Shown in pieces: positions 9,293 through 53,264 of a DNA stretch of 64,000 nucleotides. The notes under the pieces were generated by a model. The model had not been told where the DNA came from and ran no database searches. It saw nothing but the letters and a program-made list of their open reading frames with translations. A program made the translations under genes and the position numbers. How positions within the stretch are numbered: the stretch's first letter is position 1; the number at the start of each line of letters is the position of its first letter. Origin of the DNA: Oikopleura dioica (lineage: Eukaryota; Animalia; Chordata); the NCBI GenBank assembly GCA_907165135.1, contig OU015569.1, positions 10,106,001 to 10,170,000 of the forward strand, given 5' to 3'.

Positions 9293-13964
<4,672 letters not shown>

Positions 13965-43454: not shown

Positions 43455-45437
43455 CTAAAGAGTGTCTGCGGCGTTGTTGGACGGAGCGAAGTATTCTGGG
43501 TAGCAACGGTACATTAAAATCGAGTCTGGCGGAAGGTACAGACTGATGGTATCCTTGAGTTTGTAGGAAGTAGCTCGGTGGTTGGGATCTTAAATCGGCT
43601 TATTATTTGGTCCATTGGTAGAAAATTGTTTTATCTAAATTAATATGAGTTGAAAGTTATATTCCGGTCGGAATCTTAGTTTAAAGCCGTTCCAAAAGAT
43701 CGACGCAGAGGTAAGATCCAACATCAGCCTTGAGACCAGCGTCAGCGAGAGTGAAATGCATATGTTGAGGCCGTCCGTCAGTTCGCTTCGAGACAGCGGC
43801 CACTGCGTATTCGCCTCCTTGCAGCGGTCTCTGCCACACTTCCATTCCAGGAATCAAGCCAAAACTATTCTCAACTTCGGATAGCATGTCACTTGTGGTG
43901 GTGTGGTTCAGAACGCGTCTTCCTTGAATTCCAAGAGGGTCTGTGTGTCGGATTAACGGATGATAAATCAGGAAAAAAGGTTCATTTGGGTTTTAGGGCT
44001 CTACTGTCCTGGCGGCGAGCAACGGTACATTATAATCGAGTCGGGATCGACGTAGAGCGTGATGATGTCTGTCATGTTCCACATCTCGAGAGGAACCGAC
44101 GAGTCAAACAAGTCGACGCAGGTATAGAGTCCGTTGCCGATGTCTTTGAGTCCAGCCTGAATCAGTGAGTTACAACGCTGCTGGCGCATTCGAAGCGTAC
44201 CTGTTTGAGAGTGAACTGGACCGAGCGTGGAGTTCCGTCAGTTCTAGCTGATACGACCCCAAGCGCGTACTGCTCGTTGACGATCTCTCGAACCCAAACA
44301 GAGTCGCCTTTTCCAAGCCCGTCCGTTTCATTCAAAACTCGACGACCCTGAATTCCCAAAGGATCTAACAAACGAATTCTCATTTGAAGAAAAGCTCTCG
44401 TCAAAAAAAGACATTCGAGGTTCAAAATACTCCTATTCAATTCAAAATAAGATTCAATCCGAAACTTGATTAACAGCGATGACGGCTGTGTTCTGATAAA
44501 CGTCTCGCATTTCTTTGGACATGGTCCTTAGATCAGTTGAGAGGAAGAGGGGTGCAGCGACGATGGACCAGATGCCGAACTGAACTTGAGCCTGGTTGAC
44601 AGTGAGCGCGTAGTTTCCGCCGATTAGCATGTCAGGGTCGTTCCACTTTCCAGGACCCGCAGCCTTAACCAGAACATCCGCGTGATCGCCCCACCACTGC
44701 GAGATATCAACGATATCATCCCAGTCGTCTTGAATATCGCCGTAATTTCGCCACACATTGCAAATTTCACCAAGCAAAGTGTAATTCACCTGTGGAGGAA
44801 GACCACCTACAAGAAAATCGTAAATAAAGCTATCGATTACAGGCATCAGAGTTTTATTAATTTTACCTTGATAGGCAGGCCAAGAGCAAGAATAAATAAT
44901 CGGTCTTCCAGTATTGTTAAGAGCGTGGCTCATCGCTGGATATCCAACTTTCTGCTGGTCATCGTCAGAGTAGCACCCGTCATACTTGAGCATATCAATT
45001 CCCCACTCAGCAAACATATCTGCATCTGTTTTCTCGTAGCCCATTGATCCTGGGAAGCCTCCACAAGTGTGGGTGCCCATGTCACCATAGATTCCGAGTT
45101 TCAAGCCCATGGAGTGAATCTGATCAGCCAACCATTTGATTCCATGCGGAAATCGAGCAGGATCGGCGGTGATTTTCCCATCCACTCGATCTCTCAAAGG
45201 CCAGCAATCATCAATATGGACGAGTTCGTATCCAACTCCGAGCCAACCGTCTTTTGCCAGTCGCTCGGCCTGTTCCATGAACAGTTTCTCACCGATACAG
45301 GTGTCAGGAAAGGTCTTGCAATCTGTGTTGCATCGGAATCTTTCCCAAGCGAGCCAGCCCATGGGAGGGGTTCTAGCGACGCCATTATTCATCGCCGTCG
45401 CCAGCGCAATAAAAGATCCAAAAATCTTCATCTTCAT
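43455..45437 (-). CDS. NAGA: Alpha-N-acetylgalactosaminidase (GH27) with two alternative C-terminal exon sets
   Basis: TPPMGWLAWERFRC, IDDCW, KLGIYGD.G..TC.G.PGS, LKYDGC, SCSWPAYQGGLPPQVNY, CNVWRN..DIQD.W, WNDPDML. C-terminal set A is 44364-44001 and set B is 43940-43455; both start DPLGIQGRRVLN. Confidence 0.93.
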
Positions 45438-50615: not shown

Positions 50616-53264
50616 ATGAAAGTATTAAATTTTACAATTTTAAGCAGTGTCTTTGCGGCCGAGCAGTGCTGGTCCGAAAATAGTCCTTATTCGGGAACAG
50701 TTTCTGTGACTAGATCAAGAAGGGCTTGCCAAAATTGGAGTTCCTCGTGGCCTCGGAAGGTTGCTCACCGGCCGAGTACAGAATCGCGAAATTATTGCAG
50801 GAAAGTAAATGATACTCGACCGGGGAAGCTAAAGATACCTTAGGAATCCTGATAATGATCCTGGAGGACCATGGTGCTATACTAAAAATGGAGACCGTAC
50901 GTGGGAATTTTGCGACATTCCTAAATGTCGGCGTAACTCAGCCGCAGTAGAAAAGGATCCGTGCGATAAGAGCGCCTTCTATTACACAGGCTTTACGAAC
51001 ACCACTAAAACTGGCCGAGAGTGCTCAAACTGGCGATATTCACCCCATAATTATTGCCGGACGTTTGACAAACAAAGATCAGGAACGTGGCTTCATAGCT
51101 ATCTTATACTCTTATCTATATGAACTTCTCTGAAGCCGAGTTAAGGACCTTTCTGCTTTGTTGAATACGATGACTTTAATTGGAGACATGGAGGAACAAT
51201 TCGAAAAAGGGAACAGGAAAGCTGTACGGTCTTGCCGGAACCAGAAATGCAGAAGGATTCGAGAGAATGTCCTATTGGTTGTTTGACCGATGATGTCGGG
51301 TCGGAATACCGAGGAAAAGCGTACATGACAGCCAAAGGTTTTTTGTGTCAAAGATGGGACGTCGACTATCCAAATCGTGTTGAGCACGCGCCTGATGCTG
51401 ACGATAGATCTCACAACTATTGCCGCAATCCAAACAACGATCCTCGTGGTCCATGGCAAGGTTCTTCGTTATCAAATTAGATAAAAAGCAATAAAATAAG
51501 ATTGAACCTAAAATAAGTGCTACACATTTGACCGCATTTCGAAGAAAGGGTACTGCACGCAAATCCCTCTCTGTGAATCGTCCGGTAGACGTCCTCCAAC
51601 GACAATAAGACCTTCAACTACGACGCGCAGGAGACAGCCAAGTTGGGTCAACCCAACATCACGTCCAACTACAACAACTACCTCGAGAATAACATTCCCT
51701 CCAAGAAATTCTGCGCGTCCCTCTTCCGCGAGGATTCCAGCTAAATGTGGCGATCCAATAGTCAAAGATCAAGATATACTCGCTTCTGTTACGAACTTAG
51801 TTTAGGTTCATAAACGCAATAACTTGATTTACTTTTGATTTCAAATTAGCAAAATTGAACTGATAAAGACAATCGAAGATGGAAACCAGGTTCACTGAGA
51901 AGATCAAAACGGATACATGGTGGAATTAACGCTATTGCCGGGTCATTCCCATGGATAGTTTCGTTGAAAGGTCCCTCATGAACGGCTTTAAACTCCTTTC
52001 ATAGAAGTTCTATCAATTTACTTTAATAGCGTGTTCAAGTTAATAAGCCTGAAAAGCAACAGAAAATTGTGCAGGAACGATTCTAGGACCGCGGCTTATT
52101 GTTACGGCGGCACACTGTGTTGCTAGTCTAACAGTTGAGACCATCCGTCTTTTTGCTGGTGCCTTTTCGATCCGCAAGTATGGTTATATTTTTCTGTGTT
52201 AAAAGATGTTAAAGTTGGATCTGATGGCGTGGAGCTGACAGCAAAGGAAATTATTGTTCATCCGGATTTTTATCAAGCATCTGGAGGCGCACCAAGGGAA
52301 AGGGCAAAAAGTCTACTGTTTTACTCCTCTAGTAATCACAAGGCCCCACGGATAGATATGACGTTGGTCTTGTTTTCGTGGAAGATATACGCTTCAATAA
52401 TTATATCCAGCCTGCCTGTTTTCCCAGGTATCATCAAATTATGTGATCTTCCAACTTTGACGCTTCAAAGGCCAGAGAGCTTGGAGCAAATTGGGAGATT
52501 ATCGCAAAAGTCATGAGAATATACAACTGCTCAAAAGTTACTATTCTAACTCAGTAAAGATGATAGAACTTTATCAAATAACTTTGTTCAAAGATTATTT
52601 TTTGTTTAGCGAGGAAGACTCAAAACCAGAGGATGGCGATGTGTGTGTTATCGCCGGCTGGGGAGCTTCTCGAAGCCAAGAATATTATCAATTTGTACTG
52701 CACGATTTGTTTTCTTTGTCGTAATGAGTTTTTCGTAGTTGCAAAAGGGCGTCATCCGAATTTTCGATGACAATCAATGCAAACGTCTGATTGGAAGCCG
52801 ATTCCGTTCTGATCAAGAGATCTGCGCCGGCCGCGTCGACGGAAGGAGCGGTTGAAAATATGCTTAGCGAGCAAACTAATCTATTCAAGTGATTGGTACG
52901 CCATCAGCAAGCTGCTTTCATGGCTTATTTGCGGAGAAAGTGGCTTTGTACAAGTCCAATAATCAGAACAATAGAATTTGGCGGCTATTCAACCAGCTTA
53001 AAAGTGTTGATAGTTGTCATGGGGACTCGGGAGGGCCACTCATGTGCTACCGGGAGAAATCTTCTAAACCTCGATGGACCCTTGATGGAATAGTCAGTTG
53101 GGGAGCTGGGTTTTGTGGTTCAGCTGGCAGTCCCGGGGTTTACCAAGAGTTTGCCTTTTACAGGGGTAAGATTAATCGCCAAGAAAAGCGAGATATATGT
53201 TGTTTCAATTTATTTAGAGTGGATTTTCCAGGAAGCAAGGAAGTACAATAACAGACGGCAATAA
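50616..53264 (+). CDS. Secreted plasminogen-like serine protease: 3 kringles, Thr/Ser/Pro linker, trypsin domain
   Basis: Kringle motifs NYCR|[19 protein letters not shown]...GPFCF and [14 protein letters not shown]|CYT; RSKR-IHGG; TAAHC (His), RYDVGL (Asp), [10 protein letters not shown] (Ser, Asp189-type S1 pocket); GIVSWG..CG..GSPGVY. Confidence 0.92.

Follow-up and report, generated by a model that had tools for sequence, protein, structure and literature searches.

In docking/selector systems of the Dscam1 exon 6 type, also found in 14-3-3zeta and MRP1, competing RNA structures govern alternative splicing, and RNA pairing selects among mutually exclusive exons. Terminal pairing of another sort is found in the nonconventional introns of Euglena, which follow the code 5'-N3-CDG ... 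CH'G-N5-6/R and whose boundaries can be slid along flanking direct repeats (PMC12501133); CGG-CCG is among the motif pairs shown to work there (PMC12501133). In Oikopleura dioica the median intron is 49 nucleotides (nt) long, and non-canonical introns that start with G and end in AG (G*-AG introns, here G-start introns) make up 11-12% of all introns (PMC8008620). Here we describe an intron of the O. dioica gene for the lysosomal enzyme alpha-N-acetylgalactosaminidase (NAGA, glycoside hydrolase family GH27), which is single-copy in the 64-Mb genome searched and lies on the minus strand of a 64,000-nt stretch of contig OU015569.1 (positions 10,106,001 to 10,170,000; hereafter the window, in whose numbering positions are given). 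After exon 2 of this gene stand two tandem copies, A and B, of the C-terminal beta-sandwich domain, and the event is formally a choice between two 3' splice sites. On balance, we think it probable that a conserved helix between the ends of the longer intron is the terminal stem of a non-GT intron, is docking/selector-like, and most likely favours acceptor B.

The donor CAAG/TTTCGG (slashes mark cuts) is spliced to one of two acceptors, A at a distance of 100 nt or B at 524 nt, which stand 424 nt apart. In the proposed mechanism, the helix would close the long intron, loop out cassette A and bring the donor beside acceptor B, and the A and B arms would compete for the single 5' arm, the weak A copy having been inherited through the duplication. 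We assign the helix itself to the terminal stems found in non-GT introns of this genome; the cassette duplication would have made it docking/selector-like, and splicing to the distal acceptor most likely requires it or is promoted by it.

The locus resembles each of these systems in part. As in docking/selector control, the NAGA 5' element adjoins a constitutive exon and its predicted complements, strong for B and weak for A, lie just upstream of the duplicated cassettes; the 3' arms overlap on one 5' arm, such that one would pair at a time with the skipped variant looped out; and the variants are duplicated coding units, each expressed (B in mRNA L008, A in mRNA L016). Unlike those systems, NAGA has two variants only, each a multi-exon terminal cassette with its own stop, its arms lie 3 nt and 8 nt from the cuts rather than deep in the intron, and it is spliced at non-canonical sites; its proximal arm is, moreover, very weak, and the arms show no covariation. 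As in Euglena, the intron is slidable and not GT-AG, has TTT-CGG...CCG with the motif 3 nt inside the 5' end, and is followed by an exon that starts with a purine (A). Its 3' spacer, however, is 8 nt (7 if slid) against the 5-6 of the Euglena code, an AG always stands at or across the 3' cut, and the host is an animal with a conventional U2 spliceosome. Like the G-start introns, it belongs to this genome, has a weak 5' site and sits in a very compact gene, but the exon 2 junction needs a start in TT, CT or TA, or an end in NA. It also differs from the other stem-closed non-GT introns described below in its length of 524 nt, in enclosing an entire coding cassette, in having a second 3' arm that competes with the first, and in fitting the G-start rule in no placement. 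The literature search returned no description of terminal stems in Oikopleura introns, much subscription literature lying outside that search. We see the feature as a variant both of competing-helix control of duplicated exons and of stem-closed non-GT introns, and the docking/selector interpretation as partly supported.

Relatives were collected with a word-based protein search in which exon 2 was compared with prokaryote-style open reading frames on marine metagenome and Logan contigs, frames that read through the donor into the intron. By nucleotide identity to the window, the genomic relatives are L017 (96.8%), L014 and L018 (88-89%), and L015 and L020 (about 75-81%); L001-L004 and L007 belong to a more distant larvacean, and L005 and L006 to another species. 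Among the transcripts, mRNA L016 comes from the same lineage as genomic contig L015 (98.8-100% identity), and mRNA L008, which has a poly(A) tail, represents a fourth lineage. A pattern scan of metagenomes for further lineages returned the L015 lineage alone again. Exon B1 of L015 carries an 18-nt insertion (AAQLCA; L015:2940-2960) that neither L020 (99.5% identical) nor mRNA L016 has, an in-frame length polymorphism inside one lineage.

A preliminary description of this DNA had proposed that the intron 5' end pairs with a segment just upstream of acceptor B, and this pairing is confirmed: TCGGATTGA (44454-44462, minus strand) pairs antiparallel with TTAATCCGA (43948-43956, minus strand) over 9 base pairs (bp), eight Watson-Crick and one G:U, in a geometry that would loop out cassette A as had been claimed. 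In a numbering that makes T44464 intron position +1 and gives the acceptor AG positions -2 and -1, the paired stretches are +3..+11 and -16..-8 of acceptor B. At least 9 contiguous pairs linking the first ~20 nt of the intron with its last 30 nt arise in 2.3% of shuffles, and the RNAduplex energy of the intron ends is matched in 2.1%. The duplex with the B arm has an energy of -11.2 kcal/mol. In folds of the whole region from exon 2 to B1 (530-570 nt), the helix is in the minimum free energy structure of three lineages, with pair probabilities of 0.85 in the window, 0.72-0.75 in L014 and 0.99 in L015. A local hairpin between the TTAATC of the exon and the 5' arm was also considered and was rejected: it forms in the window only, and synonymous changes break it in L014, L015 and L008.

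By itself the complementarity is marginal, and conservation is what lifts the helix above chance. The 5' arm (+1..+12) is identical at 12/12 positions in the window, L014, L018 and L015, with its core GG(A/G)TT kept in L001, L007 and L005 as well, and the 3' arm is identical at 9/9 positions in the window, L014, L015 and L017. For comparison, these positions score 4-8/12 and 3-6/9 in the two GT-AG introns of the gene. Close by, the sequence past +12 diverges, as do the five free bases that separate the 3' arm from the AG, and the exon's own copy of TTAATC varies between lineages at synonymous sites. In the spacer upstream of acceptor B, TGATTT.TCATCC.TTAATCCGA is kept in the window, L014 and L015, and the 5' half of the spacer diverges. 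Both arms are constrained, since a synonymous divergence (dS) of ~1-2 leaves neutral sites nearly randomised. L005 keeps the 5' core, as GGATTGAAAA, and the partner of this core is there a 3' arm of other sequence beside that contig's acceptor (-8.9 kcal/mol). A relic of the pre-A motif, GAATAAGTTTCTTAG, is seen in L005 (405-430), about 45 nt upstream of the acceptor in use, which suggests that the acceptor has moved in this species.

The junction that this helix would close is unusual. Exon 2 ends in GTT AAT CAA G, the last G being the shared G at 44465, and the exon 2 alignments of mRNA contigs L008 and L016 reach this base. Acceptor A (AG at 44366-65) stands before AT CCT and acceptor B (AG at 43942-41) before AC CCT; both read AG/AY CCN and both need G 44465 for the Asp of the conserved QDPLG. 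In the window the junction can be written as TT..AG or as GT..TA/CA, and there is neither a GT..AG placement nor any other that starts with G and ends in AG, so the junction is not that of a G-start intron. As the preliminary description had pointed out, splicing from the GT at 44465-64 to either AG leaves a 1-nt deletion in the window sequence. The shared-G junction that it described is likewise borne out as genuine, and is slidable, the same single G being present in independent contigs and the mRNA agreeing. The window, L014, L018 and L015 have the donor CAAG TTTCGG, L001 and L007 have CAAG CTTCGG, and L005 has CAAG TAATGG; every acceptor in the compared contigs is AG followed by AY; the single-G contigs represent three lineages of the O. 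dioica complex and two other larvaceans. Because donors and acceptors agree across contigs of these lineages, the single G is a conserved state and not the product of an assembly loss. At the transcript level, mRNAs across the junction read CAAGAC, and 8/8 full-length larvacean transcripts, retrieved with the reading frame of exons 1 and 2, contain (N/D/S)QDPLG. Alignment of mRNA L016 to its L015 genome places CCAAG at both intron ends, allowing six placements, none of them GT..AG and none otherwise starting with G and ending in AG. The two escapes that had been offered earlier both fall, a G missing from the assembly (CAAGGT) to the five independent contigs of different lineages that carry one G, and a GA donor giving NQVSDYPLG to the eight QDPLG transcripts.

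As to the exact cut, a GT/GC reading (GT..NA/G) is favoured by the second base of the donor, T or C in every case, and the other (G/TT..AG) by the AAG exon end and the invariant AG; stem-to-cut distances in four introns do not discriminate between them. Other canonical donor and acceptor pairs nearby in the window sequence were tried, and none preserves the frame. The 5' splice site of U12-type introns is /RTATCCTT. A U12-type intron was also rejected, as the donor G/TTTCGG is without that 5' consensus; a search of the genome for U12 small nuclear RNA gave no match, in a search without a positive control.

Acceptor A had been described as lacking any match to the intron 5' end, which needs correction: AATTCG (44378-44373) pairs with CGGATT (44461-44456) over 6 bp, one of them G:U. 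This pre-A arm is conserved in the window, L014, L015 and L001, and it shares the exact register of the B arm, C(+4):G(-9); six pairs at that exact register have a chance of 0.5%. The common register comes from the duplication, because the arms are visibly paralogous (AAT[T/C]CG). The predicted layout is one 5' arm facing two competing 3' arms of unequal strength, of which the stronger is distal.

Both outcomes of the choice are seen as spliced mRNA. In isoform B (L008), exon 2 is joined straight to B1 and B2 with A skipped. In isoform A (L016), exon 2 is followed by A1 and A2, and then by the A stop, the spacer, and B1 spliced to B2; when A is chosen, B therefore sits in the 3' untranslated region. 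Cassettes A and B are both intact in the window, L014, L015 and L001. Ratios of nonsynonymous to synonymous divergence (dN/dS) are 0.00-0.09 for cassette A and 0.05-0.21 for cassette B, with dS to L015 of 0.9-2.5, and by this measure purifying selection acts on both cassettes. A tree of the C-terminal domain was built from single window exons and mRNA-derived rows (P0033, which the motif pattern did not match, was left out); in it L001 A and transcript P0021 fall into one group with the A copies from the O. dioica lineages (support 88/88). Because A domains group across species, the A/B duplication predates these species. Another larvacean (L009-L011, transcript P0024) has no intron between the Q and D of QDPLG and one cassette only, and this intron and the A/B duplication are therefore lineage-specific gains. 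In L009 (8660-9280), a GT-AG intron follows GIQG, and further on there is a GA..AG intron, AAG/GAATG...TTAAAG/GAT.

Stems of this kind are not confined to one intron. The NAGA exon 2 intron has a non-GT start and a short stem inside both junctions, which is kept in its relatives L014, L015 and L017, and terminal pairing was not seen in NAGA's two GT-AG introns (p 0.86, 0.95). The non-GT intron between B1 and B2 has a terminal stem (Table) whose core, GGCT with AGCC, is kept in L014 and L015. An intron of a kringle gene (51457-51517, plus strand) reads TGG/CAAGGTTC...GAACCTAAAATAAG/TGC, a shared-G junction that is either CA..AG or GC..AA, and it has a 6-bp terminal stem, AGGTTC with GAACCT. Intron 1 of a junctophilin gene (13744-13964, minus strand), TTCG/CTTTCAGGGCTGCAT...ATGCAGCCCAATTTAG/AT, also has a shared-G junction; its terminal stem, GGGCTGCAT with ATGCAGCCC, is a perfect 9 bp, and the 3' side ends at -8. 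The 'shared G' of the B1/B2 junction itself is different in kind from that after exon 2 and is a T4-versus-T5 run difference. The window reads CTTTTGG/AACGG; an additional T in L017 accounts for the sole gap in 884 aligned nt; L014 (CTTTTCG/GAACGG) and L015 (CTTTTTG/GCACGG) have ordinary G-start introns (GA-AG or GC-AG). The orthologous G/GA..AG splice leaves cassette B out of frame in the window assembly, and the T4 run is probably a homopolymer run-length error or a private indel.

Several observations weigh against a helix that directs the choice. The complementarity alone has p ~0.02 and was found post hoc. There is no covariation, both arms being invariant within the O. dioica complex, and selection on sequence is inseparable from selection on pairing because the arms are invariant. 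The helix to acceptor A is thermodynamically negligible (-4.5 kcal/mol, pair probability at most 0.19), and both isoform mRNAs come from related lineages and not from the window's own. L001 loses the helix in the same register; it has a shifted, bulged 10-bp alternative (-7.9 kcal/mol), which the full-length fold does not predict. In addition, the conserved block before B is ~27 nt, longer than the arm, and could be a branch site and pyrimidine tract (yTGAT at ~-28, TTAAT at -16..-12). This last point leads to a possible, though somewhat unlikely, explanation in which the two arms are independently constrained splicing signals, complementary by chance: the 5' one would serve recognition of the odd donor, and the 3' one would be B's branch site with its pyrimidine tract. 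The reach of the conserved block well past the arm fits this, as does the recurrence of AAT at -14..-12, both in L001 and ahead of A and of B. The GT-AG intron between A1 and A2 has a TAAC-like motif about as far from its end, which fits too, as do a chance of complementarity of ~2%, the missing covariation and the loss of the helix in L001. Yet the gene's GT-AG introns have no comparable conservation at +1..+12 and -16..-8, three other non-GT introns (B1-B2, kringle and junctophilin) have terminal stems of unrelated sequence, and the 5' core has another 3' partner in L005. The helix fits no less well among the terminal stems that non-GT introns have in this genome, and there its primary role would be to render an odd intron spliceable. 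Gene anatomy, junction, both isoforms, selection on the cassettes and conservation of the arms are observed; pairing of the arms in vivo, and its control over the choice between A and B, we infer from the sequence.

The remaining accounts are weaker. It is quite improbable that the pairing is a functionless relic of a transposon-derived intron, with terminal inverted repeats and a duplicated AG/AAG target site. The ends do resemble inverted repeats and are flanked by direct repeats (AG, AAG, and CCAAG in L015), and miniature-transposon introns are known in the larvacean Fritillaria, as cited in PMC13326754 and PMC12501133; against this, intron and spacer are single copy in the 64-Mb genome, the intron position is common to at least three species-level lineages, and a neutral leftover would not stay invariant at dS 1-2. 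That one cassette is a dead duplicate, with no real alternative splicing, is very improbable: B1-B2 is indeed out of frame in the window assembly if spliced G/GA..AG, but this frame problem is a single T-run difference missing from the 96.8%-identical relative, both cassettes are intact in four lineages with dN/dS at most 0.21, and there are spliced mRNAs for A and for B. The window assembly is Nanopore-based (PMC8008620) and has one probable run-length error 770 nt away, which would lend some colour to an assembly error (a true donor CAAG/GT with one G lost) or to a real donor at the downstream GA. This we find scarcely credible in view of five short-read contigs with the single G, the CAAGAC mRNAs and the eight QDPLG transcripts, and for the relatives an assembly error is, on their contigs, refuted. 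Finally, a broader proposal goes beyond the helix favouring acceptor B, namely that Oikopleura has a structure-defined splicing mode, convergent with the Euglena nonconventional introns, in which a terminal stem and not GT/AG would set the cut, and in which duplication of the 3' arm with its cassette would create a competing-helix isoform switch, NAGA being the first natural example; this we regard as rather unlikely.

The identity of the gene was established from exons searched individually for Pfam and PDB matches. Its product has the Melibiase_2 catalytic domain followed by the C-terminal beta-sandwich, with solved NAGA structures closest, and the best named protein matches are tunicate and vertebrate NAGA. 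The 113 amino acids of exon 2 align over their full length with NAGA of chicken and human, the match running up to ...INQ. Coordinates of all features are collected in the Table. NAGA intron 1 (44807-44866, minus strand) is in frame and stop-free, and its retention would add 20 residues to an unbroken protein. Rfam and tRNA scans of the 64-kb window gave no matches. In two other larvaceans, proteasome/COP9-type genes (RPN7, PCI) lie just upstream of NAGA (L001:700-4400; L012:3159-3317), as does ATG8 in L001.

Table. Features of the NAGA locus in window coordinates; positions with a sign are counted from the intron ends
Feature	Position	Strand	Details
NAGA exon 1	45437-44867	-	Pfam Melibiase_2, E 3e-78
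NAGA intron 1	44807-44866	-	60 nt, GT-AG
NAGA exon 2, end of GH27 catalytic domain	44465-44806	-	Pfam Melibiase_2, E 2.6e-42
Docking-like 5' arm, TTTCGGATTGAA	44453-44464	-	+1..+12; pairing part 44454-44462
Donor-to-acceptor-A intron	44365-44464	-	100 nt; TT..AG, or GT..TA slid by 1
Pre-A arm, AATTCG	44373-44378	-	-14..-9 of acceptor A; partner CGGATT at +4..+9
Cassette A	44001-44364	-	Pfam Melibiase_2_C
Exon A1	44201-44364	-	cassette A
A1-A2 intron	44157-44200	-	44 nt, GT-AG
Exon A2	44004-44156	-	followed by TAG 44001-44003
Spacer, A stop codon to acceptor B	43943-44000	-	3' half (~-35..-8) is the conserved block
Selector-like 3' arm, TTAATCCGA	43948-43956	-	-16..-8 of acceptor B
Acceptor B and cassette B	43455-43942	-	Pfam Melibiase_2_C / Melibiase_C
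Exon B1	43940 to ~43692	-	followed by non-GT intron to AG 43590-89
T4 run at B1 end	43694-43697	-	T5 or TTTTC in relatives
Stem of B1-B2 non-GT intron	43596-43689	-	CGGCTT (43689-43684) with AAGCCG (43601-43596), p 0.02
Exon B2	43588-43458	-	TAG 43457-55

In total, shared-G (slidable) junctions in the O. dioica genome can be real and conserved, and each of them needs checking, because one of NAGA's two is a homopolymer-length difference only. If the helix is functional, NAGA would be a small, natural and tractable system, with one 5' arm, two unequal 3' arms and two protein read-outs, and would offer a test of how Oikopleura splices introns that do not have a G start and an AG end in register. 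It would also bring a chordate, and one whose splice sites here are non-canonical, into the range of docking/selector-type control over duplicated exons.

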